64,000 nt of DNA from Cyanophora paradoxa CCMP329 (taxonomy: Eukaryota > Plantae > Glaucophyta): the NCBI GenBank assembly GCA_004431415.1, contig QPMI01000493.1, positions 124,001-188,000 of the forward strand, given 5' to 3'. Made by a program: the position numbers and the translations under genes. Shown in pieces: positions 37,042 to 64,000 of the stretch. The first letter of the stretch is position 1; every line of letters begins with the position of its first letter. The notes under the pieces are model-generated. The model worked only from the letters and a program-made list of their open reading frames with translations, searched no databases and was not told the DNA's origin.

Positions 37042-40000
37042 CTAGCGCCTGAGGTGGACGAGGAAGCGCTGGGCGAGGGCCCGGGCCGCCTCGAAGGCGG
37101 CCCGGGCATCCGTCGATCCCGAAGTTTTGGTCGATCCCGATGCCTTTTCGTCGATCCCCAAGTCCACCCTGATCCTACCGCCTGAGGTGGACGAGGAAGC
37201 GCTGGGCGAGGGCGCGGGCGGCCTCGAAGGCGGCCCAGTAGGCGAGGAGCACGCCGACGTTGGGCCACTGGTTCGCGAACGCGAAGCCGTAGTAGGCCAT
37301 CACGTCCTCCCCCGTCTGAGGTGGGAAAGAAGGGTCAAGGTTTGGCGTGGGGAGGGATGGGGCAATCGAAAAGTAAGGACGTAGTAAGTTTGAGAAAACC
37401 GGTTATAATTGAAGTATATAAATATATATACGTAATGATTTAACGGAGGGAAGAGGGGAGGGGGCACCTGGTAGGCGCAGTCCGGCTCGCCCTCGCACGA
37501 GAAGGCCTGGCCCTGGACCTCGTTCGCGATGAGCGACTCCAGGGGGTACCGGTACCACTGCGGCGCGTGACGTCAACGGAGTATATATAAGGGGGTAGAT
37601 GAGCGAGGGGGGTACCAGGAGGTAGGCCATCCACCTCCAGCCTTGCGGGATGTTGGGGACGGGAATCTGCGGCGGCGAGGCTCAGAGAAGATGTGTGCAC
37701 AAAGCTAACGAAGATCTGAAGCCAGCCTGCCGCACCATGAACCCGTTGAACTGCGAAAAAGCGATCAGAGCAGCGCAAGAATATTGATACTCGAGCTGCA
37801 GATGGCAGAGTGCTCTATAGCTCGCACAAGCTTAGGCGGCGCACCATGTCGAGGAGGGACTGGACGAAGGGCGCGATGGTGTACGCGATGTCCCCCGACG
37901 GGCACACGAAGCTGCGCAGGCGCGGTGGCGGTGTCAGTTTGTGCTGAGAAGGCGGGATCGGCCCCACAGACGGCGCTAAGACTCTTAACGGACTGGCGGG
38001 CGGCGGCGAAGAGCTCGAAGGTCACAGTGAGCTTGGGGATCGACGGAAAGACTTCGGGATCGATGGAAGGAAGGGGGCGCACGCGAGCATGGAGGCAAAG
38101 GACTGGCAGGCGGCGGTGAAGACGGCCGAGACGAGGAAGAAGAAGCCGAAGCGCGCGCCGCCGTCCGCCCCGCTCATCCCCGAGAGCCAGTCTTCGAGAT
38201 GAAAGAGGCGGATCAGAAAGATTTCGGAAATTCGAACGAGGGCGGGGCGGGGTTCGGTCTCGCGGGCGCACAGATGACGAGGGAGGAGAGGAGAACGGTG
38301 AGGGCGTAGAAGGGCGCGTTCGCCAGTGCGTCTGCGGCGGCGCCGTTCTGAGAACACCGTATTCTAAAAGCACGAAAGGCCGAACGAACCGGAGACGTGC
38401 GCGGCGAACGACTTGTACATCCCTGCATCCATTGTCAAGTTCTGCTCCGCTATGCTCTGCTCTGCTACGCTACGCTGTGCTATGCTCCGATCGCTCCGAC
38501 CCTGAGCGAGCGGCTTTGGACGGCGCACCCATGGCCCGCTCGCGGTAGTAGACGGCCCGCGTCGACATCTTCGAGGCGATCGAGCCGACCGCCAGCTGCA
38601 TCTGTACATGCGGAAAGGGATTCGAGAGTTAAAAGATCAGATAGCCAAGAAATAAGGAAGGATTAGAATTAGGAATAGAGTGAGAAATTAAACGGAGGGC
38701 TAAGAGCTAAAGCATGGAATCCAAGGCTAGTTGACGGCCGCGGGCCGGGGGCGGGCGGACGTGGAGGGTCATGATGAGGTAGCACATGGAGACGCGCATC
38801 CGGGCGTACGCCTGCGAGTAGCCCATCCGCCAGTACTCCGTCCCGATCAGGAAGCAGATGAACATCGTCTGCGAAACGAGGCCTCAATAAAGCGTGGGAC
38901 AGAGGAGGCAGATCTAGAGTAACGGGAAGGAAGGGCGGACGGTGAGGAAGTTGGTCCAGAACTCGCTCGGCTGGCGCCAGAGGTGCCGCCAGTTGCGCGC
39001 CGTCAGCACGCGGATCTGAACCCGCCGCCAGATTCAGGCTCGACTTCGCGATCGACGGAGAGTGCGGAGCGGCCGCACCTGCGTGCCGAGGCCGCTGGCG
39101 TACATGTGCTTCATGGGCACCTCCCCCGCGCCCGGCGCGCCGGCCGCGAACCTGCGCTCCTCCTCCGCCAGCCGCTGCGCATGCACGCGAGTCGCCGTCA
39201 GTGCCGAGCTGAAGGAGAGCATCGAAGCCGAGCGCAGACGCCGAGAACCTACATGGAAGCTAGAGCAAGGACATAGATGAAAGCATCTTCGTTCATAGAA
39301 TCTAAGCTTAGCCCAGCGCCACGCACCTCGGCCATGCGGCGGCAGAGGTCGGAGCTTTTGTACGCCGCCACGAGCGCCTCCCCCAGCTCCTCCTCCTGCA
39401 CGGCAGGCAGGAAGTTCACTTCGGGATCGACGGAAAGACTTCGGGATCGACGGAAAGACTTCGGGATCGACGCACGGAGGAGCCGGCAGCAGCACGGGCG
39501 GGGGCGGCCTTGCCCTGCGCGATCTCGAGGAGCAGGTCGGCGGGGTTGCGGTGCGCCGGGAGCTCGTAGCCGAGCCGCTCGAAGTAGGAGAGGACCGTGG
39601 CGCTGCGGGCGCCTGCGCGCGACGCGCCGCGATCACGTCGGGGTTCAAGCTTAAAGGCTACTGATATGCAGAGGGCGACTGCTTAAGCTCAAGGGCGACT
39701 TGAAGGCGTTACTGGTGCCTACGCTTAAGGGCGACTGAGATCTAGATGCGACTGATATGCAGAGGGCTACTGGGGCGACTGATATGCAGAGGGCGACTGA
39801 TATGCAGAGGGCTACTGCTTAAGCTTAAGTTGCGGTTCAAGCTGAAGGGCGACTGGGATGGAGGGGGCGTCCGAGGGCACCCGTCCGACTTGGACTTAGA
39901 CTCGGGATCGACGGAAAGACTTCGGGATCGATCGAAAAAAGGGCGTGGCGATTATATACATATATAGAGGGCGTCCGAGGGCACCCGTCTCGCCGAAGTA

Positions 40001-43000
40001 GCAGACGCGGCCGCCGCGGCGCAGGAGGAGGAGGTGGTCGAACGCGTCGAACACGTCCGACGAGGGCTGGCTGCGCGCGCGGAAATGTCGGAATAGTTGG
40101 AAGAGCGAGCTCGAGAGAGGACCGAGCCGGCTCACTGGATTGTGCAGACTGCGCGGAGAACAAACGCTCGGGTCAGGGGACGGTCGCACGCGCCGCCCAT
40201 GCCGGGGGCTTCGGAGGAGGAGATCTAGATGGGGTAGAAGGCTTATTATAGGGCTTATTATATTATAAGATAAGCATCAAAACGTGCGACGGTAAGCTTC
40301 TTCTTCTGAGCGAGCGCGCGGGCGAGCGCGCGCGCACCGACGGTCTGGCCGCGGTCGCAGAGCCGCCGGACGAGGCCGACGAGGGCCGAGGCCGCCACCG
40401 CGTCCAGCCCCGTCGTCACCTCGTCTGCCACCGCGTCCAGCCCCGTCGTCACCGTCGCGCTTTAGTACATATATATAGAACCTATATTAACGAGGTGTTC
40501 TATATTAACATTAGATCTAGATTGTTGTTGTGTGTTTCTTAATATAGATCCAGCCCCGTCGTCACCTCGTCTGCCGTCGCGGGGCGCTTTAGTATATATA
40601 GAGCCCGGGACGTCCGACGGCTGGAGTTGATATGGAACACCGAGTGCAAGAAAGGCGCGCGTGCCTCTATAGGCTATCTGTTCATCTGGCCATCGAGGGG
40701 CGGGCGGGGCGGGCGGGGCGGGCGGGCACCGAGGAAGAGGACGGCGGGGCGGGCGACGAGCTCCATGGCGATGCAGACGCGCTTGCGCATCTGCGTGGGC
40801 GCGGGCGGAGTTAGCGAAGTCGGACATGTACAGGTCCGGGAGGCGGGAAGCGCAAGGACGCGCCTCGAGCGAGGCGCCGGAGATGAGGGCGTCCGCCGAG
40901 TCGGCGAGGCCTGCGCACGCGCGCAGTGTCAGAGTCGACAGAGGCGGCGCGCAGGCCCCGGATTCCCGAATTCCCGCCGACTCACCGACGTCGGAGAGGG
41001 ACGAGTCGGCGAGCTCGACCTTGCGCTCCGCCTGCGAGCGGACGCGCGCGCGGTGCGCGTCAAACGCTGAAGGCTTCGGAGGAGGAGATGGGGTAGAAGG
41101 CTTATTATAGGGCTTTATAATAAGATAAGCATAAAACTTGGGCGCGAATCGAAGCCAGCTTAAGCTCGTGGCTTGTGGGGTCCGGTGGCGGTTACGAGAA
41201 GGGAGGAAGCGCACGGGGATGCGCTGGTTCCAATGCTTAATGGGGGGAAGAAAGCCAGCTTCTGGATTCCAAATGTTTTAAAAAGGCATCTTAAAGTCTC
41301 CCCGAGGCTTAAAGTCCCTTCTGAGCTTCGAGCGCACCGGGAGGCGCTCGTCGAGGCGGAGCATGGCGGACATGACGACCGCCTCGCGGACCGTCTGCGT
41401 CGGGAAGAGCTCGTCGAACTGCCCCCGCCCGCGGCCGTCCGCGCCCCTCGGTCAGACAGGCGGCTGCAGACAGACAGACAGCCTCCAGCTGTTTAATATT
41501 ATTATATATATGTTGTTGTCGTCGTTCTGTGCGCTCGACCGGCTTTGAAGTTCACCTGCTCGACGTAGGCGACGAGGCGGTTGAAGAACTTGTCGCGGGG
41601 GCGGCCGTTCAGCGCGACGGCGCCGCCCAGCCTGCCGCCCGTCTTCCGGCCCGCCAGCACGTCCAGAAGCGTCCTGCCCCGTCCCGAGCCGCGCGTCAGT
41701 CAGCCGAGAGAGAAAGAGAGAGGGAGGGAGGAGCAGCGCACGTCTTTCCGCCGCCCGACTGGCCCATGAGCTTCGACACACTCACTCCGATCAGCAAAGC
41801 GCAGAAGCAAAGCAAAGACGACGGCGCAGTACACGTACCGCCAGCATCATGCCGGAGGAGGCGAAGCCCGTCACGCCGTCCAGAAGGACCTTGCGTGTCT
41901 TGGGGCGGCCGCCCGGGCGCAGCCGCGACAGCGCCCGCAGCGCCGAGGCCAGCGCCCCGCCCTTCCCTTCTCCTCCTTCGCCGCCCTCCAAGTCCTCCTC
42001 CTCTTCCTCCTCCACTTCGACCTGAGCGGACCTCAGCGCGAGTCGAAAATGAATCGAAGCTTAAGAAAGAAATATAGGGCACTCGCCTCGTATTTCACGT
42101 CACGGAAGGTGAGGAGCGCGGGCGGCGGGGCCGAGGCTGCGGCCTGCGCCCCGCCCGTTTCCGGCTGGCCCTTAAGCTTCTTCGACGGCTCCGCGATCGT
42201 CGGGGCGGGCTTGGCCGGCGGCTCGCCCGCCGCCGCATCCTCCGCCTCGCCCTCCTCGTCGTCGGCGTCCGGCGGGGGGAACTCGCGCGGCGGGCGCAGG
42301 AAGGCGACGCCCAGCCAGGCGATGAAGAGGAAGGCCGCCCAGAACAGCGTGGAGACCGCCAGGTCGTACCTACATCAATATTTATTTTGTAGCGCTACTT
42401 TCAACTTTTGATTGCGACCTGAAGACGCACCCCGCCCAGGAGTAGTCCGTCTGCATCGCGAACGAGTCCAGCGCGGTGCGGCCGACGTCGTACCCCTTCT
42501 CGTCCACGACGTCGTGGAGCTCCGCGACCGAGAGGGCCTCCAGGGGGTACCGGAAGATCGAGACGTCTGCGGCCGCCGTCAGACAGACGAATCCGAGACG
42601 CAGAGAGGGCCTAGGCCTGGGCGCGGGGCGCACAGTAGAGCCAGATCCACGGCTTCGGGATCCTGCGCGCGGGCGGGTATATTACAAACAGCTGTTAAAT
42701 TACAAAGAGCGGTTCTATTTTATTCTAAAGAAAGAAAGCGCTTCCTCGGGCTTCAGGGGCACTTTAGAGCGGTTCTTCAACAAAGAGCGGTTCTATTATA
42801 GCGGCGCACAGGGAGCGGGGCACGAGGAAGCCGGCGAAGAGGTTCATGGCGGAGGGGATCATAGCGGAGAGGAGCGCCGCCACGTCGGGGCGGTGCACCG
42901 CCGAGCAGATCGCCCTGGACGGAGAATAGAGTGAGCGAGGGTGAGCGAGGACAATCTCAAGATCCCAGAGCTAAAGTGGATATATATAGCCCTGGGCGAA

Positions 43001-46000
43001 GCCCGGGATCGCGATTGCGCACATGACGATGCCGTCGGAGCAGAGGCGAATGATGAAGTGGCCGTAGACGAAAATGCCGAAGCGCGCGCCGGCGACTCCG
43101 GGCTGTGCGGGGGCGGGGCGGAAGTCGCGGTTGGCCTCAGAGACTTCGGAAAGAAAGATCACTCCGGCCTGGTGGTGGGGTGGGGCGGGGCGGGATGGGG
43201 CAGATCTAGAGCGGGTCCGGGGATCCTAGTACAGTTGACCTAGCCCCAGAGATGTAGATCTAGAAACCAGAAATAAGGCAGACGACTTCAAAACAAACGC
43301 GCCTGGAACCCGGCGGCGAAGAAGGCGACGGCGCTGTAGAGGAGGACCTCGGCGAGGGAGAAGGGCACGCCCACGACCACGTCCGCCAGCAGCCACTGAA
43401 AGAGTCGAGGAGGAAGTGAGAGGCGAAGTGAGGTAGTAAAATCGACCAACCGTGAAGGAGCGGTAGTAGGCGCGCGTGTGCTGACCCTCGTACACGGCGC
43501 GGTCCGCGTACCAGGGCTCGATCTTGGCGAGGCCCATGAACCCGAAGCTGGGGAGGGGAGCCGGGGTGTCAGGTGTTGGTTAGGCTGGGACCGGGATGGA
43601 GGAGGGAGGAGGGATTTCGGGCACTTCATGACGCCTGCGACACCGGCGTCAGGGGCCGCGGCCGCGAAAACAGAGGGACGGAGGCGGAGCTCGCGGGCGC
43701 GCGCACCGAGGCTGATGAAGGAGACTCGATCCAGGCATCCTGAAGAAGAAGAGACTCGTGTGGTCAACACGCAGGCAGGCGCGGCGGGCCGGTCGCGATC
43801 GGTCGTGCGGACCGTCGAGCGTGTTGGGGCGCTTCAGGAAGAGCGTGCCGGCGATGACAGCCAGCAGCAGCGACTGGACGTACCTGGCCTCGCGATCGGG
43901 CCGACGTGAGCCGCAAAAGGAAAAAGGCGGGACTGAAGTAGGGCACCGGGCGACGAAGAAGGACTGCATGCGCCACGTGAGCTTCCAGCGGCGCCCCGCG
44001 AGCAGCGCCAGCTCCCGGACCGCCCCGTTCGCGTACCGCCGCCCGAACTGCGGAGGAGACGTCGCCCGCCCCGCTCACATAAGGCGGCGTCCGATTTCGG
44101 ACTCAGCCTCGGAGCGCACCCGCATGGCCTCGGAGGGCGCGTCGACGAGCTCGCCGGCGGCCTGCTTGGTCTCCAGCTGGCGCACCTCGGCGTCCACCGC
44201 CGCGAACTCGGGCGAGCTGCGGCCATGAGCCAAGCGAGCAGCTGAGGTTCAAGCGGAGCGGTCCGGGCGCACTTGCGGTAGGCGCGGGCGAAGTGGCGGG
44301 CGACGGGCGCGACGCCCTCGAAGCCCGCGTACTGCCGCGCGCTCTCCGGCGTCACCATCGCCTGCGCGCGGGAGTAGAGTTAGCACTAGGTTCCAGGCCT
44401 TTCGAGCTTCGCTAAGGAGGGAAGTGGAGTTAAAGTAAGGGCCGACTTGAGGACTTCGACTCGAACTTGAGATGAGCCTAATTATAAGTACCTGAAGGAA
44501 GTCGGGGGCGGTGATGGAGGGCGGGCAGCGGAAGCCGAGACGCTGGAAGTAGGCGAGGGGGGCGTCCCCGGCGGGGCCCCAGTACAGGAGCCGCCCGCCC
44601 CGCGAGAGGAGCGCCACCTCGTCGAACGCCGCGTAGGCCTCCCTGCGGCGCGCGCGCTGAGCATTCAAAGGATATAAATATGGCGATGGGGATATTTTAC
44701 GATACAGCTTAAGCTTTAATCGTGCGCAGAACCCTTGTAACGCTTTGCGTGAATTTAAGCTTGGCGCACGCGGAGGGCTGGAGGAGGGTGGCGAGGACGG
44801 AGCCGCCGCCGTCGGCGACGGCGCGGAGGGCGCGGCAGAGCTCGAAGGCCGCCGTCGCGTCCAGGCCTGCCGGCGGGGCCGGGCGGGCGGGGTCAGCGGC
44901 GCGCTAGCAGCTCAAAACGTGATAGCTCAAAACAGATGAAATGTGACGGCTGAGAAAGGCTCCAAATGATGCCGCACCGTTGCTGGGCTCGTCGAGGAGG
45001 AACAGCGAGGCTGCGGGGCGGGTCACGCCAGCTCAGAAATCTCAAAGACGCGTTCGACAGAGCCCATCGTCACCTGTGCCCATCATCTCCACGCCGATGC
45101 TGAGGCGCCGCTTCTCGCCCCCGCTCAGACCCCGGACCGTCGCGTCTGTCCCGGCGCCCGCCCTTGCATCAGCAGTGCCGAGCGGACCGAGCAGCCGGTG
45201 CGCGCGCACCGCCCACGGGAGAGTCGGCGACGTGCGTGAGCCCCAGGGTCGCCAGCACGCGCTCCACCTTCGAAAAAACGAGTGAGAAACGGATCGACCT
45301 GGATCTTAGATGGGAGGGGGCAGGCGGGCCTTGGTCTCGACCTCGCCGGCGATGGCCGAGGGGGCGCGGCACGACCCCCCGAACTGCAGCGTCTCCCGCA
45401 CCGTCAGCAGCGCTGCCGAGGTCGAAAGATCGAAAGAACCGCTCAGCGATTTAGATAGACAGATCGAAGCGTAAGCGAAGCGCAGGGAAAGGAGGTGAAA
45501 CTTAAGCTTAAGCTTAAGCGCAAGGGAGCGGTTCGTCCAGCTCAAGGGGAAGCTTAAGCGAATTCGAATTGCTGAGGGAAGGGAATGGAGGGAGAGGAGA
45601 GGGCCGCACGGTAGTGCCTGTCGTCGCCCTGGTCCACGAGGGCGATGCGGCGGCGGAGGCCTGGGACCTGCGGGAACGGGCGTGCATTAGCTGAGAAGAC
45701 TCCAAAGAATCTCTATTGATTATAAGACGGAAGATGGAAGAGGGGGAGTGCATAAATAAGCTAAAAAGACTCCAAAGAATCTCTCATTGAGAAATGATAA
45801 GATGGAAGATGGAAGAGGGGGCTGCATAAATAAGCGAAGGAAGGCGCGCGCGCCTGCTTGGGGGGCAGTCCGTTGTAGAGGACGGTGCCGCCCATGAGGC
45901 CGGGGCCCAGCTCGCTGGTCGCGCGGGCCAGCAGCTTGAGCAGCGTCGACTTCCCGGAGCGGGGAGGACCCAGCAGCAGCGTCGCACGGCCCGGCTGCGA

Positions 46001-47764
46001 GGGGGAAGGGGAAGGGGTTGAGGAGGGGCGAGGGGAGGGGGGGGGTGGGAGGGGGAAGGGCGGGGAAAGTGGAGGAGGGGGTGGGGCGGAGAGGGAGAGG
46101 GGGGACCGGGGGGGTGGGGGGGGGGGCTGGGGGTGGGGGGATGGGGGGGGAAGGTGGAGGAGGGGGTGGGGCGGAGAGGGAGAGGGGGACCGGGGGGTGG
46201 GGGGTGGGGGGTGGGGGGGGAAGGTGGAGGAGGGGTGGGGCGGAGAGGGAGAGGGGGACCGGGTGTGTGTGTGTGGGGGGGGGGGGGGGCGGGTGTGGAG
46301 GGGGGGAGGCGAAGTGGGGTTGGGGATGCAAATGGGTAGGGGCGGAGGAGGGGTGAAGGCGGAGGGGTGGGGCAGAGAGAGGGGGAGCGGAGGAGGGGCG
46401 GAGGAGGGGAGAGGGGAGAGGGGGCGCGGGAGGAGGAGAGAGGGAGGGGGGAGGGAAGGGAAGAAATGGGGGGGGGGAAGGGGGAAGGGGGGGGGCTTAC
46501 GGAGAGGCAGCCGGTGATGCCGCGCAGAACGGGCCGCCGCTCGACGGCGGCGCCGCAGGGCCCGCCCCGCCGCAGCTTCTCGGCAGCCCACGCCCAGGGC
46601 GACGCCGTGAGGATCGTCTCGTACGGCGGGGCCGGCCCCGCGCCGCCCTCGGGCTCCGGCGCGCGCTCGGAGTCCGCGGCGAAGGTCAGGTCCCCTGCGG
46701 CCTCTCAGGAGGGAGGGGTACGTAGAATCGGGGGGGGTACGCACGGAAGGTGACGGCGAGGGAGCCCTCGCCGAGGCCGCGGGCGCGGGCGTCGGCGATG
46801 CTGTCCAGAATCATGGTCTTGGCCTTGACGAGGGGGGCACGGCGGGGCGGGGCGCCCCGCAGGGTCGGCGGCGCCGGCGCCCCGTCGGCGGCGGGCAGGG
46901 GCGGGCCTTCTTCCTCCCCGGGTACGCCGAAGTCTCCTGCTCGGCGGTCATTGTAACGATCGCGGGAGGTGCAGGGGTACAGTGCGGTGGGCGCACCGCG
47001 CACGGCGGTCGGGGCTGCAGCTGAGGGCGCGCGCGCTGCGGGGATCCGGGGTGAGCTTAAGCGGCGGGCGGGCGAGGAGGGATACGGCGGACAGGTCGAG
47101 TTCGGGGAGAGGGGGTGCGCGCCGGGGCCGCCGGGGCCGCCGGGGCCGGAGCCCGAGCGCAAGGCGGCGCCCTCGCCCCCGTCCGAAGCACCTGAGAGCG
47201 CCGCGCGTGAGGCGTGAGAGGCGTGAGGCCGAGCGCAGCGCACCGGACAGCGCTCGGCCGACCCCGCCGGCGGAGGCGGCGGAGCGGGCTTGCGCCAGCG
47301 TTTCCGCCGAGGACTCGCCTGGGGTTCGCGGTGAGCAGCAGGCGGGCCGACCGCGGGGCGGCGGGAGGGCGCGCGCGCGCACGGCGGGCGGCGGACGACG
47401 AAGAGCGCGCTGCGCGGCGTGGTTGTGAGCGGCGGCTGCGGGGGATGAGAAAGGGGGCGAACAGGTTGGCGAAGTGGGGCCAGGTGAGGCGAGCGGCTCC
47501 ACGCCGGGGCCTCCGGGGCCAGAGCTGGAGCGCAACGGCACGTCCTCATCACGATTCGCTGCGGGCGCGGCGCCGTGCGTTTCAGAGAGGAGGTGCGTGG
47601 AGCGAGCGGCGCGGAGTGAGACGCACAGGCGACCGAAGCCGCCGCGGAGAGCGGGCGGCCGACTCCGCCGCCAGCGGAGCTCGTACGGGCGCGCGCGAGC
47701 GCCTCAGATGCTGCGGGCGAGTCGCCTGCGGTTCGAACGCGTGAGCCGCGGTCTCTCGTGGCAT
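37042..47764 (-). CDS. Full-size ABCG/PDR-type ABC transporter (NBD-TMD-NBD-TMD)
   Basis: NBD1: [54 protein letters not shown]2: [68 protein letters not shown] exons follow each NBD, and the protein ends FLVHLRR* (stop at 37175 or 37042). The 5' end is uncertain. Confidence 0.92.
39419..39472. repeat. 20-bp intronic repeat CTTCGGGATCGACGGAAAGA; dispersed copies at ~38035-38063, ~39901-39933, ~37112-37160 (inverted) and 28137-28190 (variant)
   Basis: Read directly. Confidence 0.9.
39655..39855. repeat. Intronic degenerate tandem repeat (GGGCGACTGATATGCAGA / CTTAAG units)
   Basis: Read directly. Confidence 0.8.
45695..45835. repeat. About 70-bp imperfect tandem duplication in an ABC transporter intron
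   Basis: aagactccaaagaatctct...gatggaagaggggg...tgcataaataagc occurs twice. Confidence 0.85.
46000..46496. repeat. G-rich intronic tract with repeated GGAAGGTGGAGGAGGGGGTGGGGCGGAGAGGGAGAGGGGGACC units
   Basis: Read directly; three unit copies. Confidence 0.85.
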
Positions 47765-51600: not shown

Positions 51601-54600
51601 CTGGGTCCGCTCCGTTCGCGACCAGGTGCCATTTACCCCCAATCCCATCATACCCTGCGCCTTCATTCTGGTGCAGGTCCGCTTCGGCGAGGCGGTGGCC
51701 TCGTGCTTCTACGCGACGGAGCCGCGCCCGTGCTTCGTCGAGCTCTCGCCGCACCCCGTCCTCGTCAACTACGTCGCCGCCTCGGTGCCCGGCGCGCTCG
51801 CCCTGCACACGCTGCACCGCGGCGAGCCCGACGAGCGCGCCTCGCTCCTACGCGCCGCCGCCGGCCTCTACGTCGCCGGCGCCGCGCCCGGCCTCTGCTG
51901 GCCCCTCCTCGCGGGGGCCGCCCCACCCGCGGCCGCCGCCGCCGCGGCGCGCCTGCCCGGCCCGCGGGAGTGGTGGGGCGCCGAGGGCGACGCCCCCGAC
52001 GACGCCGCCGACGAGGCGCCGCTCCCCGAGCGCCTCCGCGCCTTCACCGCCGCCGTGCGTACGAATTTCTGCATTTGATCGCTATCGAGATAAATTGGAA
52101 TTTCTTAAAAAGAACCGTCAAATGCTTTATAGAAGTCGCAATCATGACCCAACTGTTATGAAGCGGAGATTACTGAACAAACTTAATGCTTCTCGCGCCG
52201 ATGGGATTTAAAGATTTAAGCAATTGTATTCAGAGAACGTTCGAATGCGGCGCGTGCGCAGCTGCTGGGCGTGGGCCCCGAGGAGCTGGACCCGACCCGC
52301 CCCCTGCGCGAGTACGGCATCGAGTCCATCTCGGCCGTCCAGCTCAAGCGCGCCCTCCCCTCTTCCCTTGGATTTCCGGTCCCGCCTTTCCTAACTCCTG
52401 GACCGCAGGTTCTGGATCGACGAGAACGTCCGCCCGGACATCATTTCGCAGGTCTTCGATTTCATCATTCGCCCCCTCTCGTCCGCTCTGATTCGTCCGT
52501 CCGGCGCGGGAAGGTGGAGCTGGTGGAGGGCCCCTCCCTGGCCGCCATCGAGGCCCGCTTCGAGGCGCTGGAGGCCGCCCCGGCCCCTGCGGACCCCTTC
52601 GCCGCCGCCGCCGCCCGCGCCGGCCCTGGCTCGGTGGGCGAGCGCGAGGGCCAGCGGGAGGCCTCGCCCCAGGAGGAAGGTGCGCGCCTGCAATTCGAAA
52701 TAAGCCAAAAACCTTCTTCCTTAAGATTCTTCTTCTTCTTTAGAGCCTGAAAGAATTCTTCCTTGAGCTGACAGCGCGGCAGGCATGTACATGGTGCAGC
52801 TCTCGTCGCCGGACTCGGCGGGGCCCAACGTCTGCTGGGCCGTCCTCTTCGAGGGGGACCGCCCCGCCCCCGGAGACGTCCTCAAGGTAACCTGACGCTT
52901 TGCTTCGCTTAAAGATTCCGGCCCTGATTCGAACCTCGGATAATACCTTAGGCGCTGCTGCACGTCGTGAACGACGACCCGATCTTCCGCACGCGCTACA
53001 CGGTGGGCGCGGAGGGCATCGTCGCCGTCGTCGACCCGCCCCTCCGCGCCGCGTCGGCGCTGCCCGTCGAGGCCGCGCGGGCCGACTCGCGCGCGGCCGC
53101 CGTGGCGCGGTTCGAGGCGGTCGCGGGCCGTCCGTTCTCGCTGGAGAGCGAGCCGCCCCTGCGCGGGCTCGTCTGCGACGTCCCGGGCGGCCGCCTCGTC
53201 GGCCTCTCCATCCACCACATCGCCATCGACGGATTCGGCCTCTCGATCCTCTCCCGCCGCTTTGGCGACGCCCTCCGCAGCGTCCTTGCGGGGCGACCGC
53301 CGGCGCCGGCCGTGCGCGCCACGTACGGCGACTTCGCGCGGGCGCAGCTGGCGCGGTGCGTGCGCCGTCTAGATTTATACTTCTTTTCTTCTTGATTTTT
53401 CCGACGAGTCTGTTCTTTCTCTCTTTCTTTAGCGAGGAGGAGGTCGAGGCGGCGGTGGCCGCCCTCACGCGCAACCTCACCAACGACCTCGAGGTGCGCT
53501 TTTATTTCTTCACGATCGCCCCAGCTTGAGCTTCTCCCGGAGTCCCCTCTTCTTCTTCTTATTCTCCAAGACGATATTGGATATTAGCCTCCTTCCTAAA
53601 AAGCTGCCTTCCTAACGACCAGCTTATCACCAACTCGCGATCGGGCGCGCAGCCCCTCGATTTCCCCGTCGACGTCCCCGCGGCGCACGCCAAGGCGGCG
53701 GGCGGCCCCAGCGGCCAGGCCGCCGGCCACATCCAGTTCAGCCTCCCCGCCGATCTCGTCAAGGGCCTCGAGGTGCTCCGTTTCGCTCTCCTGCAGCGCC
53801 TTAGATTCCTCCCTCGAGCCGAGCCGAGCCGCGATGGCAGGCGGAGTCCCGCCGGAGCGCGACGCGGACCAAGTTCTCGCTCCTGCTCGCCGCCTTCGCC
53901 GCCCTCCTCCGCCGCTACACGGGCCGCGAGGACCTCCTCATCGGCTGCCCCTTCGCCAACCGGTGCGCCCCGGCCCGCTTCGACTTCCCCTCTGTGTCTA
54001 TGCCCGATCGCGACCGGGCGCGCACGCTCGCCCAGCTCCTCCGCGTGGTCGTGCGATGTCGTCGGGCTCTGCATCAACACGCTGCTGCTGCGCGTCGGCG
54101 TGCCTTCCGACTGCAGCTTCGCCGCCCTCTGCGACCGCACGGCCGAGGCGGCGCGCTCGGCGCTCGCGAACCAGGCCGCGCCGCTGCAGCGCGTCGCGCG
54201 GCACCTGCGCGCCATCGGCGTCGACAGCGCAGTCACGGGCGAGGTCCTCTTCGCGCTGCAGAACCTGCCGGCGCGGGACGTGAGCGCCGGCGAGGGCCTG
54301 GCCGGCCGCTGGACGCCCGCCTACGCCCCGCACTCGTCCTTCCCGCTCGCCCTCGAGGTCTTCGAGGAGGACGGCGGCATGCGCGGTGCGGCTTAAACGC
54401 TAATTTGTCTTAAAGCTTCTGAAAGCTTTCTCATCCTCGAGCCGCGGCCGCAGTGCACATCATGTTCTGGAGGGCGCGCTACACGGAGCGGCTCATGCGG
54501 CAGTTCGGCGAGCACTTCGTCGCCGTCGTGCGGGCGGGGCTCGCGCAGCCCGACTCGCCCGCCGGCTCGCTGCCCATCATGGCCCCCGCCGAGCTGCGCC

Positions 54601-57600
54601 TCGTCACGTCCGACTTTGCGGACGGGAGCGTCAGGGACGGGCCGCTGCAGCAGAAGCCCGCGTGCATCCACGCCGCCTTCGAGCGGCAGGCGCGCCAGCG
54701 CCCAGAGGCGGTGGCGCTCGCCTTCAACGCGCGCGAGGTGACGTACGGCGAGCTGGACGCGTGGGCCGAGGCCATCGCCGCGCGCCTGGCCGCCGCCGGC
54801 GCGCGCCGCGGGGGAACGGTCGCCCTCCTCCTCTCCCGCACGCCCGAGATGGTCGCCTCCCTCCTCGCCGTCCTCAAGGTGCCTTATTTCACGATCACGA
54901 TCTCGCCTTTTATTTCTGAGCCGATTCGCGCAGACGGGCGCCGCGTACGTGCCGATCGACCCGAGCGTGCCGGCCGAGCGCGCCCGTTCGATCCTCGAAG
55001 ACGCCGAACCGAAGGTGCGACCTGAAGAGAATTAACCTTGGATGCCCGAATCCGACGGCTCTGTGCGCGCAGGTGCTGATCACGAACCTGCCCGATGTGA
55101 CGGCGATCGCCGGCGGCCTGCCCATCCACGTCGAGCGCGTCTCGGGCGAGGCGCTCGCGGCCCCGGCCGCCCCCGCGCAGCGCGAGGCGCCCACGCCCGA
55201 CGATGTCTGCTACATCATCTTCACGAGCGGCACCACCGGAAAGCGCGTCGCACTTTCATTCCCGCCCTTGTCGCACCGTTCGGATTAAATTCTAAGCGAT
55301 TGTGCGATCCGCAGGCCGAAGGGCGTCGAGATTCGCCACTCTTCCGTCACGGCGCTGGTGCGGGCTGCGAGCTTCGCGCCCTTCTAATCTCCGCGCCCAT
55401 CCCGCCGGCCGCGGGCAGATGGAGGCGATGGGGCTCAAGTTTGGGACGGAGGCCGAGGGCGCCACGACGCTGCACCACACCTACCAGTTCGACGCCAGCG
55501 TCTGGGAGATCTGGGTCCGCCTCAGCTTGTATCGAGCTCGTGCCGCCGGCGCTCGGAATTCGAAGGTGGCTGACATCGTCCCAGGTCGCCCTTGCGTTCG
55601 GCCGAACCCTCGTCATTGTCCCCGAGGTCCGCTTGCCCGGGCTGTTCTCGAATTTCCGGATTTCCGAACTGCTCGCACCCAGATCGTGGCAATGTCGCCG
55701 CACGACTACGTCGACCTGATCGCGGCCCGCGGCGTGACGCACATCCTCGCCACGCCCTCCTTCTTCTCCGTCATGCTAGAGTCCGGCTGGGCCGAGCAGG
55801 CGCGCGCCCCCGCCCGCCCGCCCGCCCTTGTTTCGTGCTTTCTCCAATCTAAGGGCCGGGCCCGCAGCGCGCCAAGATGAAGATCCGGCACGTGACGGTG
55901 GGCGGCGAGGCGGTGCCCTTCGAGCTCGCCCGCCGCTGGCGCGCGCTGGCGCCGGCCGGGGCGACGCTCTGGAACGTCTACGGCCCGACGGAGATCACGG
56001 TCGTCTGCACGGCGGGCCCGCTGGACGAGCGCTGCCTCGAGGCGGGGCGCGTGACCATCGGGCGGCCCTTCCGCGGCTGGTCCTGCTTCGTGTGCGTCCA
56101 ACCTCGACTCGCCGAATTTCTGCGGAAATTCAGAGCGCTCCGCAGGGTGGACAAGCAGGACCAGCCGGTCCCCGTCGGCGTCTGGGGCGAGGTCGGTGAC
56201 GGCCAACTGGAGAGGCGAAGTCTCAATAAATTCTTTGCTGACGCATCTCCGGCAGCTGCTGGTGGGCGGGGCCGGCGTGGCACGCGGCTACGTCCGCAGG
56301 CCGGACCTCACCGTGCGCGTTCTGAATTTCCTCGTTTTACGCGATTTTCTGTCCTGGCTGATCATGAGCCTTGGATTTGCAGGCATCCAAGTTCGTGCCG
56401 TGCCCCGTGCAGTGGACCGGCCCGGGCGACGGGCCCGTGTACCGGACGGGCGACCTCGTCCGCTGGACGGCGGAGGGCGAGATCGAGTTCCGCGGGCGCA
56501 TCGACCTCCAGGCGCGTCAACTATCTAAAACCAAAACGCGAATCTAATCCAATATTCCTATAGCTAGCTTCGGATCTGCGCCGCGCGCCTTTTCAAGATT
56601 TCTGATCCATGTACAGGTCAAGATCCGGGGCTACCGCGTGGAGCCGGGCGAGGCGGCTGCGGCGCTGCTCAAGCACGCCTCGGTCCAGGACGCCTACGTC
56701 ATCCCCTACAAGCCCGCCGGGTCCGTCGGCCGCTCTCTCTTTACTTGACCGACGTGTCCGGCAAACGTCCTCGGGCCCGTCGTTCTCTTCTAACGGAAGG
56801 CACGACAGGCCCGACGAGCTCGCGCTGGCGGCGTACGTCGTGCTGCGGACCTTCCCCTGCGAGACGGAGAAGAATTCGATCCGCGCACACGCCCGCGCCT
56901 CCCTGCCCTCCTGTCCGCCCCCGCCATCGCAATTGCAGTCGTTTAATTTCCGTTTCGTTGCAATTGCTGACGAGTTGCCGTTGTCCGGGCAGACATGGTC
57001 CCCTCGGCCTTTGTGTACCTCGACGAGCTGCCCATGACGGTCAGCCCGATTTCCGAGGGAAATCTTTCCAAATCTTTTGAAGGCGCTGAAGAGTGCGCGC
57101 AGACGAACGGCAAGGTGAACGCGAAGGCCCTGCCGCCGCCGGACCAGGCGCAGCCGCAGGCGGACCCGCACCTGCCGCCCACCTGCAGCACCCGCCGCTC
57201 CAGCAACAGCAGTTCGTCTGGGGCGACCCCGCGCCGCAGCAGCGTCCTCGCGGGAGCGGGCCAGCCGAACCGCCGGGGGAGCGCGCTAGGCAGCCGAAAG
57301 GCCAGCGTCATGGGCGGCGGGCGGCGCCCAAGCGTCCTGCCGGCGTCGCTCCGGAGGGTTCATGATCACTCCCCGTCGCCGAAGCCCCGTCCCCTGCTCA
57401 AGCAGGCCCTCTCCAACGCGTCCAACATCTCCAATGTGCATGATTTCTGTTTCTGTGCGTCCATGCCTTCACGACTTTTGACGCCACGGCCGCTGCAGGC
57501 GTCCACCGGCGTGCTCTCGCCGGCAGCTTCCGTCGGCATCCGGAGCGCCCCGTCGCAGTCTGGCGCAGACTCCGCTGTGGAGCTGGCAAGCCCCAGCGGC

Positions 57601-60600
57601 GAGGGGCCGCCGTCGCCCGTCGCGACCGGCCCGCCCCGCGCGACGCTCTTCGAGCGGGCGCCGACCGTCTCCGTCTCCGCCCCCTCCGTCCTGCGCACGA
57701 CGCTGAAGGCCGTTGCGCTCTTCAAAGGCCTCGGCAACAGCAACAAGGCGACCTCGCCCGGCGGTAACTTCCTGCAGGGCTCCGCCAGCATGCGCCTCGA
57801 CCGCGCACTCAGCGCCCGCTCGAATTCCATCGCTGGCCATGGCCGCGCCGGCTCGATCTCTGGATCCGGCTCCCGGCCGGTGCGAGCTCGAGCGCGCGCG
57901 AGCGCCGCTGCCCCCGCTATGAATCGAGGTCTCGATCGCCCCGCAGGGAGTGCACTTTGCGGTGCCCGAGGGGGAAGAGGCGGCCGATCGCGAAGCGCAA
58001 GCCAGCCACGCGGTGCGCCCGAGCCGTCTCTCGAACTCCCGTCGCGTGCGGCTTACTCGCGGCTGCCCGCAGCCCCGGTCGCCCCTCGAGCCGGCCGCCT
58101 CCATCCGCTCGGCCACCGCCTCCAACCTCGAGATCATCGTGGCGGAGGCGATGTCCGAGGCGCTGAGTGGGCACGTCGACATCGGCCGGCACGACTCGTT
58201 CTTCGACATGGGCGGTGCCCCATTAATATTTTTGCGTTTGGTCGATTTCGCATAGAATATTTTTGCGCGCGCAGGGCACAGCCTGGCGGCGACCAAGTGC
58301 GTGGCGCGGCTGCGCGCGCGCTTCGAGGTGGACGTGCGCGTGCCGGCCATCTTCGAGCACCCGACGCCCGCCGGCCTCGCCGCCCACGTCTCGGCGCTGC
58401 TTGCCGCCAAGTTCGGCGGCGGCGGCGGCGCGGGCGGCGGCGCCGGCGCGCAGGAGGCGAAGCTCCCGACCATCGCCTCGCTGCCGGCGGGGCCGGACGG
58501 CGAGCGGCAGGCGCCGGCGAGCGAGGGCCAGCAGCAGCTGTGGTTCCTGGCGCAGCTGCAGCCGGGCTCGGACGAGTACAACGTGCCGCTGCCGCTGCTC
58601 GTGGCGGGGCCGCTCGACGTCGGCCTGCTGGCCCTCGCCGTCGGGCAGCTCGTCGCGCGGCACGAGGCCCTCCGCACGACCCTCGCGATGGACGGCGACC
58701 GCCTCGTACAGGTCGCCGCGCCGGCGGCGGCCGCCGCCGAGCGCGCGGCCGGCGAGGCCCTCCGCGTCCGCGAGGTCGCGCAGGCGTCCATGGACGACGA
58801 AATACGCGCGGCCGGCGCGCGGCCTTTTGATTTGCAGGCCGGGCCCCTCTTCGGCTGCACCGTCCTGCGCGTCTCCGACACGTACTACGACGAGGTCATT
58901 TATCCATTTGCGAGTTTTGCTGCTGACGTTTATTGAGAGCTTTCCAGGCGTGCCACGTCGTGATCCTCGCCGCCCACCACGCCGTCATCGACGGGGCCAG
59001 TGCGCCCGCGCCTTCAATTTCTCGAGAGTTTTCCTCGCGCGCCGCCCGCGGCCGACGGTCTTGCAGGCCTGGCCTCGCTGCTCCAGGAGCTGGCGGCGCT
59101 GTACGGCGGCTACGCGCGGCTCGCGCGCGAGAAGGGCGCGCCGCCGGCGGTGCGCGAGGTCTGCGGGGGAAGCAGCCCGGCCCCGGCCCCGGCCATCCTC
59201 GGCGCCGCCCTCGGCTGGGCACGCGACATCGCGGCGGGCATCCTCGCGCCTGTGGCGGTGCAGTACGCCGAGTACGCGCTCTGGCAGGCCGCCTGCCTGC
59301 AGGGCGCCTACCTCGAGAGTGGCCTCGCCTTCTGGAAGAAGGCGCGCGGTCTTTGATTTTACTCTATTATAAGCACGAGAGTTTGCGGTCTATATTTTTA
59401 CTATGCGGTCTAGGGCTTTACCATAAAGATGACTTGCAATAACTACGCGGTCTTTTTCGCTTCTGACAGCTTGCGTGAGCAGACGCTGGCGGGCGTTCCC
59501 GCCATCGAGCTCCCCTACGACTTCGTGCGCCCGGCGGGCGCCCCGAAGGTGGCCGGCACGGCGCGCTTCAGCGTGCCGGGCGAGGTCATGGCGCTCGTCG
59601 ACCGCTTCTCCCACTCGGCCAAGTGCGCAGATTTCCGCCCGATTTCCGTCCGTCTGATGGCCTCGCCCGTCTGACGTCGACCGACGCGTCGCAGCTGCTC
59701 GCACTACATGGTCTTCCTCGCCGCCTTTGCCCACGTGCTGCAGCGCCTCGCCGGCGCCGACGACTTCGCCATCGGCACGCCCGTCGCGGCCCGGCCCCTC
59801 CCCGAGCTCGAGACCACCGTCGGCTACCTCGTCAACACCGTCGCCATCCGCTCCAAGTGCCCTTCCCTATCACAAACCCAGTCTGCGCGCCGCTCGGCTG
59901 AGTCTGTCCGTCCGTCTGTCCGTCCTCGCCACGCCGCCAGGTTCGAGCGGTCGGCCACGTTCGCGGCGGCCGCGAAGGCGGTCCGGGAGGCGGCGCTGGG
60001 CGCCTTCGCCCACGACTACGTCCCCTTCTCCCGCGTGCGCATGCGCCCTATCTGCTAAATTAGAACTTTGTCGCGTACAGTTAGGCAGGAGCGAATCTAT
60101 TTGAGGACGTGAGGCCTAGGCTTGGCATGGGTCCTGCCATAGTTGGAATTGCTCCAGCTTCGGTTTTCGCCGATCGCGAAATTTTGATTGGCTCGAATAT
60201 TAACTTTGCGCGCGCAGGTCGTCTCGGCGGTGCAGGCGAACCGCGACGCAGGCCGCAACCCGATCTACCAGGTCCTCCGCTCTGCACTCGACCTTGGCAC
60301 TCGTAGCTCGCTTTTCGTGGACGGCTGACTTTAGCGCCCGTGCAGGTAATGTTCGCGGTGGAGTCGTGGACGGAGCTGGCGGTGGGCGACGGCGACGGCG
60401 TCCTTCTCGACGAGGAGCGCGAGACCACCGCCGAAGTCCTCAGGTGCCTTCCACGTTTTAGTGATTTGGTAGAGATTACGCGTGTACAATTTACGCGTCC
60501 TCCGCGCAGCTACGACTTCGCCACGCCTAAGTTCGACCTGAGCCTGACGGTCGCCGACGCGGTCGGCGTGGCGGACGACCCGCGCGCGGCGGCGTGCAAT

Positions 60601-63600
60601 CTGGAGTACCGCGCCGACCTCTTCTCGGCCGCCACCGCGCAGCGCATCGCCGAGCACTTCGTCGCGCTGCTTTCGGCCGCGCTGAAGGCGCCCGACGCGC
60701 CGCTGTCCCGCCACGCGATCCTGAGCGCCGCGGAGCACCGCCTCGTGACGTCCGACTTCGCGGACGGGAGCGTCCGCGACGGGGCCCTGGAGGGCGCCCC
60801 CTCGTGCATCCACACGGCCTTCGAGCGGCAGGCGCGCCAGCGGCCCAAGGCGCTGGCGCTCGTGCACGGGCCGCGCGAGGTGACGTACGGCGAGCTGGAC
60901 GCGTGGGCCGAGGCCATCGCCGCGCGCCTCACCGCCGCCGGCGCGCGCCGCGAGAGCCGCGTCGCCCTCATCATGGACAAGGCAAGCCCTCCACTTTTCC
61001 ACATTTCCGCTCTGGCCGCTCACTCTTCCATCTCTGCCAGGCCCCCGAGGCGATTGCAGCCATGCTGGGCACCCTGAAGGTCCGCCCTGCCCGGCCCGCC
61101 GCTCTGCTGATGCGATCTAAACTATTGTCATTGCGCACAGGCCGGGGCGGCGTATGTCCCAATCGACCCCGCCACGCCCATCGACCGCATGCTCTACATC
61201 TTCGAGGCGAGCCCCGGGCGCCTGCTGTTCAGAACCGCTCCGACACGAGCGTCCTCAGGACTCGGGCGCGCGCTGGCTGCTCTCGCACAGCTCCGGCGAC
61301 CTCCCGACGCGCGTGCACAAACCGGCCTCCGACGCCGGCGTCGAGGCTCGCGCGCCCCGCCGCGCCCCGCCTTCCCCTCAATTTCCGCTCATTTTCCGGC
61401 ATGCAGGTCATTTTGGCGGACGCGATCCCGCCGGGGCTCCAGCGCCGCCGCAGGCCGGTGCCGGTGGAGCCGAGCAACCTCGCGTACTGCATCTACACCT
61501 CCGGTCCGCTCCGCTCCGCACTTTCGCTCGCTCGCGCTCACGTTTGATTTGTGCGCATGCGCAGGCACGACGGGGAGGTGCCCGGCCCTGGACTCAGCCC
61601 CAGCCCTCGCCGCTCCGTTGTCGGCCGCCGACGCCGCCGCGCAGGCCCAAGGGCGTCGCGGTCGAGCACGAGGGCGTCGTCCGTCAGGCGAGCTCCAGCG
61701 GCCCTCGGCATGGTTGCGCTCGGCTGCTGAGCCGCCGGCGCCGCCGCGTGCAGGTGGAGGCGGTGGCGGGGCGGCACCTGGCCGTGGGGCCCGCGGACGC
61801 CTGGGCCCAGTTCTTCTCCATCTCCTTCGACGGCTCGGTCCGCCCTCTATACCTTTAATACACCTGATAAATTCCATTAAGGCCAGTCGTTTTTTAACTT
61901 TAGCTTGCGCGTCCCCGCAGGTGGAGGAGATCTACGGGGCCCTCCTCCGCGGCTCGCCCCTCGTCCTCGTGCCCAAGGCGAGAGCCCCGCCCCCGCCTCC
62001 CTCGCCGCCGCCCTCGCCTCTAACTTCCAATCCGTCTCCAATCCAGAGCGTGGGCCTCTCGCCGGGGCAGCTCCTGGAGCTCGTCGCGGCCCGCCGCATC
62101 GCGGTGCTGGACATCCCCACAGCCTTCCTCGACGTCCTCTCCGGCGCGCTTTGTCCATTCTCACTTCAGATCATATAAAGAGCTTGCAAAGAGCTATAAA
62201 GATCAGATATTAATTTGGGGCGCTGGCCGCCTAGGCCACGATCGGCCGCAGCCCTGCTGACGCGTCGGTCCGCCGCGCTCTGCAGGCGAGCTGCAGGCGA
62301 TGTCGGAGGGGAGCGTGGCGGCCCTGCGGCTGCGCCACGTCATCGTCGGTGGCGACCGGCTCCTCTCCCGCCAGGCGAGCGCGCCGCGCCGCTTGAATTT
62401 CGGATTTGAAAATCAAAACGGGCTCGCGGACCCTGACTCCGGGATCCGGTCCGAGCAGGTTCTGGCGTTCGCGGCCGCCTGCAGGGGCCGCGTCAAGCTC
62501 TGGAACACATGTGCAGCCCTTTGCTGATCATAGCTTTCGCCGTCCAGCCGTCCAGCCAGCATTAAACTGAACTGTGTTTTCTTTTGCGCAGACGGCCCGA
62601 CGGAGGCGACGGTGGACTGCACCATCCGCCTCGTCGACGCCGAGCAGGAGGCCGCCTCTGAGGCTCAGGTGCGCCGTACTCTTTCTTAAGCCGCTTCTTC
62701 CATGTTTTGATTTTTATATATTTTCTTCCGCTCAGGTGGGCCGTATACGAATTCTTCCTCGCTTAGTTCGTGGCCATGGTTTGATTTTGGTTTCACGGTC
62801 TGCAGGGCCGCTGCACGATCGGGAGGCCCTTCGCCGGGCGCCGCCTCTTCGTCGTCGACAAGGGGCTCGCGCCCGTGCCGCCGGGCGTCTGGGGCGAGGT
62901 GCGAGGGCCGCAAAAGTCTGCTCTGCAGCTCGCGCCCGACGGTCGTGCTTCCGCGCCGCAGCTCCTCATCGGCGGCGACGGCGTGGCGCGCGGGTACCTC
63001 AACCGGCCCGAGCTCACCGAGGAGAAGGTCCCTACTTTTCCGGTCCAATTTCTTGGCCCCGAAATGAAAGCCCACGCCAGTTCTGCTGGGTGGACGTCGC
63101 GGGGCGGCCCGAGCGCGTCTACCGCTCGGGCGACGTCGTCCGCTGGCTCCCCGACGGCACCCTCGAGTTCCGTGGCCGCGCCGACACGCAGGCGCGCGCA
63201 CACACTCACACCCTTTAGCTCTGCTTCGATCCGCATCGTTTGTTTAGACGGGAGCGCGCGCAGGTCAAGATCCGGGGGTTCCGAGTCGAGCCGGGCGAGG
63301 TGGCGGCCGTCCTGCAGACGCACGCCGCCGTCCGCGCCGCCGTCGTCGTCCCCGCCGCCGACGCGTGCGCGAATTTCCGAAATCGATCGCAATTTCGGCG
63401 CTGACGGGGCGATCGCGAGCATGCGCAGGAGCGGCATCGTGTCGGGCCTCAACGCGTACGTCGTCCTCGACGATGCCGCCCGCGGCCAGCCCGAGGTCCT
63501 CTCTAGTTTCCTGCCACCTTCCTTCCTTCGCTTCTAATCGCCTCTCTTCTCAGGCGGCGCTGGAGGCGGAGCTGGAGGGGCACGCGAGGAGGACCCTGCC

Positions 63601-64000
63601 GCCCTACATGATGCCCGCCTCCTACACGTTCCTCGAGGCCTTCCCCACCACGGTCCGTCCGCGTTATGTTTCGTTCACTGTTTTAAAGATAGTCGTTGTG
63701 GCGTTCTTCCAATTGTACCTCGCTAAGATTCACCATTATATACGCTTAGATATTTGGCTTCCTGTTCCAAAGATGCCATTAAACCACTATGTTTTCAGAT
63801 CGTGGGCAAGATCGACACGCGGGCGCTGCCGCCGCCGCGGCCCCGCGCCGGCGCGGCGGGCGCCGAGGAGGCGGAGGGCGACAGCGACGCGGGCGGCGCG
63901 GGCGAGGCGATGACGGCGGTCGAGGAGGCGATGGCTGCGATCTGGCGGGAGATCCTGGGCGTGAAGAACATCCGCCTCGACTCGGACTTCTTCCTCCTCG
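48635..64000 (+). CDS. Hybrid PKS/NRPS: degenerate KS - AT - ACP - C - A - linker - T - C - A - T (3' truncated, about 70 introns)
   Basis: AT: VFVFSGLGPQW, GHSAGE (50502), AFHS. ACP: EYGIESIS (52310). C1: HHIAIDG (53213). A1: IIFTSGTTGKPKGV, YGPTE, YRTGDL, QVKIRGYRVE, NGKV. T1: FFDMGGHSL. C2: HHAVIDG (58975). A2: YTSGTTGRPKGV, YRSGDV, VGKID. T2 begins at ~63910 (DSDFFLL...). The start reads MPRINVQGIG|IRIGGASS. Confidence 0.93.

Follow-up and report, generated by a model that had tools for sequence, protein, structure and literature searches.

A transcribed and spliced hybrid megasynthase gene of Cyanophora paradoxa, predicted to encode an acyl-dipeptide synthetase, and its divergent full-size ABCG transporter neighbor

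Nonribosomal peptide synthetase (NRPS) genes are rare in algae, and we know of none whose product has been established. The glaucophyte Cyanophora paradoxa appears in two surveys. Shelest et al. 2015 (PMC4661987) report one NRPS with two condensation (C) domains and a gap at the 5′ end, and O'Neill 2020 (PMC7073580) reports one NRPS, whose product is "likely a tripeptide" and whose substrates are not predictable. The locus described here lies in a stretch of 64,000 nucleotides from strain CCMP329 (assembly GCA_004431415.1, contig QPMI01000493.1, positions 124,001–188,000 of the forward strand), which is called the window below and from whose first letter all coordinates are counted. Its + strand megasynthase gene extends past the window end at 64000 and appears to be the single NRPS with two C domains that both surveys list; the synthetase gene itself is already known and annotated. 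What is added here is RNA support for its expression and splicing, an ABCG transporter partner with a long spliced leader, and the near-abutting 5′ ends of the two genes. In addition, the front end is read from its sequence as a putative loader, with a presumably dead ketosynthase (KS) and an acyltransferase (AT) lacking an Arg residue, and the whole as following a predicted acyl-dipeptide–reductase logic. The AT–acyl carrier protein (ACP) loader, the presumed dead KS and the ABCG neighbor with its shared 5′ region are not reported in either survey.

The most closely comparable systems are the NRPS assembly lines for short N-acyl peptide aldehydes or alcohols, namely those of leupeptin-like and flavopeptin-like compounds, the fellutamides and myxochelin (MxcG). 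These lines combine an acyl starter, two or three amino acids with a basic last residue, and a C-terminal pair of thiolation (T) and reductase (R) domains, and the C. paradoxa synthetase, with its predicted substrates and probable reductase, is alike in these features. The reductase-release lines use a starter C domain with acyl-CoA or a ligase, whereas here an AT–ACP pair stands in cis behind the putative dead KS. Unlike the bacterial and fungal lines, this synthetase has at least 70 introns, and its product is a predicted one. The AT–ACP pair at the head of the line resembles the loading modules of polyketide synthases (PKSs), which are built as AT–ACP (DEBS, avermectin) or as KSQ–AT–ACP. 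The absence of the carboxylate-binding Arg from the AT is shared with loaders of the DEBS and avermectin type. The KSQ loaders carry a KS-sized part before the AT, as here, although no KS family signal is left in the C. paradoxa protein. For the transporter, the counterparts are the full-size ABCG pumps of plants and fungi, i.e., the pleiotropic drug resistance (PDR) type, including those of fungal secondary-metabolite clusters, which likewise carry two units of nucleotide-binding domain (NBD) and transmembrane domain (TMD) on one chain.

The gene on the + strand is nuclear; it is transcribed and spliced, and it encodes a hybrid megasynthase. From the N-terminus onward, the protein comprises a KS-like remnant, AT, ACP, C, adenylation (A), T, C, A and T, followed beyond the window by a likely reductase domain (Table 1). 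When exon 60511–60981 was used as a query among 1.84 billion representative proteins, a public model from EukProt (P0001, 3756 aa; a singleton at 90%) was recovered, which represents the locus studied here. P0001 aligns with 48635–64000 at 100% identity in 71 exons, the 70 introns averaging approximately 78 nt, and its residues 3314–3756 lie beyond the window. A motif scan of the + strand found, in order, GHSAGE (50502), HHIAIDG (53213), NVYGPTE (55973), YRTGD (56440), HHAVIDG (58975) and YRSGD (63120). Exon-by-exon Pfam searches returned Acyl_transf_1, PP-binding, Condensation, AMP-binding, PP-binding with Condensation, and Condensation with AMP-binding, in this order, and on P0001 Pfam gave one AT, three carriers, two C domains and two A domains with their C-terminal subdomains, as well as NAD_binding_4. 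An earlier reading of the window from its letters alone (the sequence-only reading) had proposed a PKS/NRPS that makes an acyl-peptide with at least two NRPS modules. The two modules are confirmed by motifs and Pfam, and the domain order supports an acyl-peptide synthetase; the PKS part of the claim does not hold, as neither Pfam nor the PDB detected a ketosynthase and the AT–ACP pair follows a KS-like remnant.

Between 55.2 and 57.2 kb, where the gene was read directly, exons of 40–200 nt alternate with introns of 50–100 nt, with GTGCGC or GCGCGC at the donors and GCAG at the acceptors. A splice-aware gene finder based on codon bias and splice sites was trained on the locus; about one third of the donors in its model are GC, and weak regions were over-split into tiny exons, which were not trusted. 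The bacterial-style open reading frames of 250–600 aa in the 48–64 kb region, where the exons are short, gave no match to a protein family in Pfam. The G+C content in the window ranges from 52 to 78%.

Transcription was followed in four RNA-like runs (X17–X20; three samples, two studies), whose contigs were aligned to positions 45001–51000. These runs contain 26–38% of the words of 45000–51000, a share that fits exons only. The contigs skip the predicted introns of the ABCG gene at exact GT/GC–AG borders, two of the ten validated donors being GC. In the synthetase, they skip intron 49303–49351 (joint 49302/49352) and cover exon 50145–50361. The roughly 70 spliceosomal introns proposed from the letters alone agree with the 70 of the P0001 mapping, the native eukaryotic character of the DNA is upheld for both genes by contigs from four runs, and an untranscribed synthetase, which the sequence-only reading had named as grounds for abandoning it, is contradicted by spliced synthetase contigs. 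The same spliced contigs refute an origin of the locus in bacterial contamination or in an unspliced transfer of very recent date, the chance of which is negligible. Such an origin might be suggested by the nearest relatives of the exon spanning C domain 2 and A domain 2 (C2/A2), since the other matches of exon 60511–60981 are large multimodular NRPSs with 29–42% identity; yet the 70 introns follow the same splice consensus as the neighboring ABCG gene, and the stretch is present in 16 DNA runs of the same organism.

The N-terminal 358 residues are probably an eroded, inactive ketosynthase. This reading follows from their position before a KS–AT-linker-like stretch and an AT of the modular-PKS type, from the KS-like N-terminus and from an ESM Atlas feature search, in which all the matches listed for this part were beta-ketoacyl synthase clusters (0.88–0.90; a lead only). 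No ketosynthase with a Cys-His-His triad was found with Pfam or in the PDB. In the linker region, the RNA contigs carry an extra base after 49775 (C), 49846 (C) and 49901 (G), at three G/C runs. With these three insertions, 49562–50089 becomes one open exon of KS–AT-linker-like sequence, where P0001 instead bridges the shifts by an intron at 49781–49852.

The AT aligns with that of tylactone synthase (E 1.6e-34), and the avermectin loading AT (4rl1) is among its PDB matches. The Arg of the ALRSRA motif, which we take to be the equivalent of E. coli FabD Arg117, binds the malonyl carboxylate. ATs for carboxylated units keep this residue, and loading ATs for monocarboxylic starters are without it; Long et al. 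are said to have found in 2002 that loading-module ATs taking monocarboxylic acyl-CoA starters lack it. In the C. paradoxa AT, HHVGRA stands opposite ALRSRA and the position of the Arg is occupied by Val, unlike in an AT of the extender type. Since this Arg is absent, the front end is best read, from its residues, as a loader and not as a PKS module that still works. The intron at 50520–50706, which separates two exons of the AT, reads in two frames as an extended stretch of prolines; this low-complexity sequence, like the GC-rich parts near 49.4–50.2 kb, drew many unrelated RNA contigs and false joints.

Both NRPS modules keep their catalytic motifs. AMP-binding and AMP-binding_C each occur twice in P0001 (E 8e-158), with core motifs A3–A10 present. 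HHxxxDG is intact in both C domains, with Condensation matches on four exons and in P0001. The phosphopantetheine Ser is kept in all three carriers (GIESIS, GGHSL and GGTSI), and PP-binding is found in three stretches of P0001. A candidate R domain, which the sequence-only reading had suggested looking for downstream, is encountered beyond 64000 in P0001 as NAD_binding_4 (residues 3448–3607, E 2e-21), with GxxGxxG and YxxxK present and profile positions 1–98 missing from the model; a terminal reductase is therefore likely. Modules 1 and 2 share 37% amino-acid identity overall. At their C/A junctions, the nucleotide identity rises to 81–91% over 246 nt, and this disparity points to gene conversion within the synthetase gene. 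In adenylation domain 2 of P0001, a proline-rich in-frame segment of 93 nt (61978–62070) has no counterpart in domain 1; as its first letters are GC and its last are CAG, it is probably an intron retained in the annotation.

The pocket residues of A domain 1 (A1) are D A W L T G V V V K, a hydrophobic pocket from which a hydrophobic amino acid is predicted. Those of A domain 2 (A2) are D G E D I G T V D K, and the three acidic residues suggest a basic substrate of the Lys, Orn or Arg type. In the proposed sequence of steps, the AT, being without the Arg for the malonyl carboxylate, would behave like the loading modules of PKSs and transfer an unsubstituted acyl group from acyl-CoA to the ACP, and the KS-like part would be inactive. 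C domain 1 (C1) would join the acyl group to the hydrophobic amino acid activated by A1, C domain 2 (C2) would add the basic residue selected by A2 (Lys, Orn or Arg type being probable), and the reductase would release the chain as an aldehyde or alcohol. N-acyl-(hydrophobic)-(basic) dipeptides with such an end are the product class that we consider somewhat probable. With an acyl loader and only two A domains, the line would be better read as making an acyl-dipeptide than a tripeptide. Leupeptin-type protease inhibitors have a basic C-terminal aldehyde as their pharmacophore, and a basic peptide aldehyde could also cyclize to an imine.

The A2 pocket also bears on another possible product, i.e., an iron chelator or other non-inhibitor, such as an acylated amino alcohol of the Orn, hydroxy-Orn or Lys type like myxochelin, with the pump exporting the siderophore. 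The A2 residues resemble ornithine-type codes, and the myxochelin synthetase ends in a reductase, as this one probably does. Nevertheless, we regard a siderophore as improbable, considering that the left 37 kb of the window holds no hydroxylase, formyl-/acetyltransferase or iron-uptake genes and that a single basic residue binds iron poorly.

On the opposite strand, the ABCG gene encodes a transporter whose four domains are arranged as NBD1–TMD1–NBD2–TMD2. A motif scan placed a Walker A motif at 41741 and an ABC signature at 45114 on the − strand, and both motifs occur in both halves, as does ABC2_membrane_7 (44492–44641 and 39986–40069, Pfam on exons). NBD1 was read from the RNA-supported exons at 45210–46936, and NBD2 shows MGQSGGGKT and CTIHQPS in the spliced model. 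The stop-free exon 42087–42368 carries the last helix of the first half, the linker and the first strand of NBD2. Because this exon joins the halves and the exons are colinear on one strand, the gene encodes one full-size ABCG, as the sequence-only reading had stated, and not two half-transporters. With PDR pumps it shares the plant-PDR-like Walker A LLLGPP.SGK and the CTIHQPS of the second half. The PDB matches of the Walker A exon are weak, Pdr5 and Cdr1 being the only ABC transporters among them. In contrast to the PDR pumps, the PDR-specific families ABC_trans_N, PDR_assoc and PDR_CDR were not seen when ten short exons were scanned singly with Pfam. Near the Walker B motif of NBD2 (40338–40459, − strand), a TTGLDAVA-coding sequence occurs twice in tandem, and one copy probably lies in an intron. 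The first plausible start codon is the ATG at 46814, although translation may actually begin within the two leader exons that directly precede it.

Approximately 0.8 kb downstream of the ABCG stop lies a remnant of the last reductase exons of the synthetase, so that the ABCG gene is situated between this remnant and the synthetase. The orientation of the remnant is opposite to that of the synthetase's own 3′ end; it may be a trace of an old inverted duplication.

The two genes share a 5′ region. In the ABCG leader, introns were located at 47192–47243, 47319–47382, 47559–47626, 47726–47781 and 47950–48023, all with GTGCG..CAG borders on the − strand; one further junction lies between 46937 and about 47106. 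A contig of X17 runs from the leader into the ABCG exon 46745–46936. The codon log-odds of the four distal leader exons are negative in every frame, and these exons are accordingly read as the 5′ untranslated region of the ABCG mRNA. The contigs with the ABCG leader end at 48230–48263, and unspliced contigs over the first synthetase exon begin at 48315–48340. The 5′ ends of the two genes are therefore about 50 bp apart or overlapping, given that contig ends are not mapped starts. The divergent genes are physically linked and share a candidate regulatory region, the outer contigs of the ABCG gene ending at 48263 and those of the synthetase beginning at 48315. The sequence-only reading had put the two starts about 0.9 kb apart. 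In fact, the first plausible ABCG ATG lies 1.8 kb away from that of the synthetase (48636), and the supposed gap of 0.9 kb is not intergenic, since an RNA contig joins exon 46745–46936 through five − strand GT–AG introns to 48261. On the synthetase side, contigs span 48315–48653, and another contig with 48764–48919 has 36 extra letters upstream. In the synthetase leader, near the shared 5′ region, positions 48372–48400 contain GGATTCC three times as a direct repeat and then a TTCCGGGAA palindrome; this stretch could be a regulatory site.

An expressed acyl-dipeptide synthetase with loader chemistry and a divergent ABCG neighbor is, as a whole, the explanation that we favor with some confidence. 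Several points weigh against it. The KS remnant is read from position, short motifs and a language-model lead: the N-terminal 358 residues match nothing in Pfam up to E 10, ketoacyl-synt included, and nothing in the PDB, and a single-sequence AlphaFold model of this part was unusable (pLDDT 38.6). Either the assembled allele is frameshifted over about 42 codons, or the assembly is wrong at the three G/C runs in the linker. The A pockets were read by eye against the GrsA register, not by a predictor; each of the nine numbered residues of the code is recovered with this register, which was checked by aligning modules 1 and 2 to each other. The reductase is encoded beyond the window, and about 100 positions at the start of the profile are missing from its public model. 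The RNA contigs show presence only and give no ranking of expression, and those at 48315–48653 carry no strand assignment; together with contig ends that are not mapped starts, this means that the transcripts may overlap. Among the 1.84 billion representatives, exon 60511–60981 has no relative above 42% identity, and the left 37 kb of the window holds no tailoring or other pathway genes. In a metagenome search, matches of 29–53% identity covered part of the query, the best long match having 36%; these are most likely distant NRPS relatives.

Some of these features would also be expected of a synthetase that is decaying and no longer makes a product, as the KS is presumably dead, the assembly and the RNA differ by 1 nt at three sites in the linker, the public reductase model is incomplete and a degraded copy of the 3′ end of the gene lies nearby. 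This is very unlikely. The catalytic motifs of the AT, ACP, C, A and T domains are all intact across 70 introns, and the transcript is spliced, with the RNA version restoring the frame.

For the expressed acyl-dipeptide synthetase, export of the product by the neighboring pump and co-regulation of the two genes are plausible from the gene arrangement. Both genes are present in the four RNA-like runs and were not found in three or four others, where the absence of words is not proof. Export of the product by the pump, or protection of the cell from it, with both genes regulated through one bidirectional promoter, is a tentative reading, to which we give clearly less than an even chance. The adjacency may instead be without functional meaning, with a pump that handles lipids, sterols or xenobiotics and a shared 5′ region that reflects tight gene packing, and this comes close to an even chance. 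The pairing is drawn from position and RNA presence, and the remaining genes nearby, which encode a phosphodiesterase, a RING protein, an RZ-finger giant ATPase and a WD40 protein, have no relation to it. Yet the transcript ends lie within ~50 bp, both genes are present in the same four runs, and pumps beside NRPS genes are generally common in fungal and bacterial clusters. The most specific form of the export reading is a minimal two-gene unit with one bidirectional promoter, in which the intronized synthetase would make a basic, leupeptin-like peptide aldehyde, active as a protease inhibitor or as a cyclic imine, and a dedicated PDR-type pump would secrete it; we consider this unlikely.

Besides the neighbors already named, the left 37 kb encodes a ubiquitin-like protein. 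The RZ-finger giant ATPase is the product of a very large + strand gene (15490–28500), which is RNF213/ZNFX1-like by sequence because it combines a P-loop (GETGCGKT, 18330) with an RZ-type zinc finger (25062–26411). It also contains a coding-like (GVGIGD)n repeat at 27593–28018.

Table 1. Coordinates of the synthetase, the ABCG transporter gene and associated features in the window.
Feature	Positions	Strand	Evidence and remarks
Synthetase exon 1	48315–48664	+	Leader of at least 320 nt, ATG 48636, donor GTGCGT at 48665; the P0001 N-terminus maps here
Synthetase exon 2	starts 48765	+	P0001 mapping
N-terminal 358 residues, putative KS-like part and KS–AT linker	48636–50145	+	Position, short motifs, ESM Atlas lead
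AT domain	50155–51787	+	GHSAGE, AFHS motif; Acyl_transf_1 at P0001 362–663 and on single exons
Loading-module ACP	52259–52519	+	GIESIS, Ser kept; PP-binding on exon 52262–52345, E 2.9e-6; ACP_SdgA_C at P0001 767–812
Condensation domain 1	52785–54580	+	HHIAIDG 53213; Pfam Condensation on exons 52952–53353 and 54037–54384
Adenylation domain 1	54678–57132	+	AMP-binding at P0001 1328–1679 and exon matches; TSGTTGKPKG, FDASVWE, NVYGPTE, YRTGD, NGK
Thiolation domain 1	58142–58390	+	GGHSL; PP-binding at P0001 2098–2160 and on exon 58277–58783
Condensation domain 2	58517–60741	+	HHAVIDG 58975; Condensation on exons 58277–58783 and 60511–60981 and at P0001 2410–2697
Adenylation domain 2	60820–63828	+	AMP-binding on exon 60511–60981; NRPS A domains in the PDB, E 5e-94
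Thiolation domain 2, start	63916–64000	+	P0001 mapping; carrier Ser and likely reductase in P0001 3314–3756
Putative gene-conversion tract, C/A junction of module 1	54576–54830	+	Partner 60718–60972; 81–91% nucleotide identity over 246 nt
Full-size ABCG transporter, probably PDR-type, coding sequence	37049–46814	−	NBD1–TMD1–NBD2–TMD2, ~50 exons; own spliced model
Spliced 5′ leader of ABCG mRNA	46937–48261	−	At least 6 exons; contigs in X17, X18 and X20
Gap between outermost RNA contigs of both genes	48262–48314		Candidate core of bidirectional promoter
Degraded inverted copy of last reductase exons of the synthetase	36047–36287	−	tblastn of P0001 3605–3618 and 3654–3695; same exon breaks

The synthetase is expressed and small, with two amino acids and an acyl cap predicted, which makes its chemistry predictable and its product searchable by mass spectrometry. 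The domain reading presented here puts a predicted acyl-dipeptide with a reductive end in place of the published tripeptide guess. The promoter arrangement with the pump offers a simple, testable case of the clustering of secondary-metabolism genes in a primary alga. If the two-gene unit outlined above were true, it would mean that a cluster logic of bacterial or fungal style has been rebuilt in an early-branching photosynthetic eukaryote.

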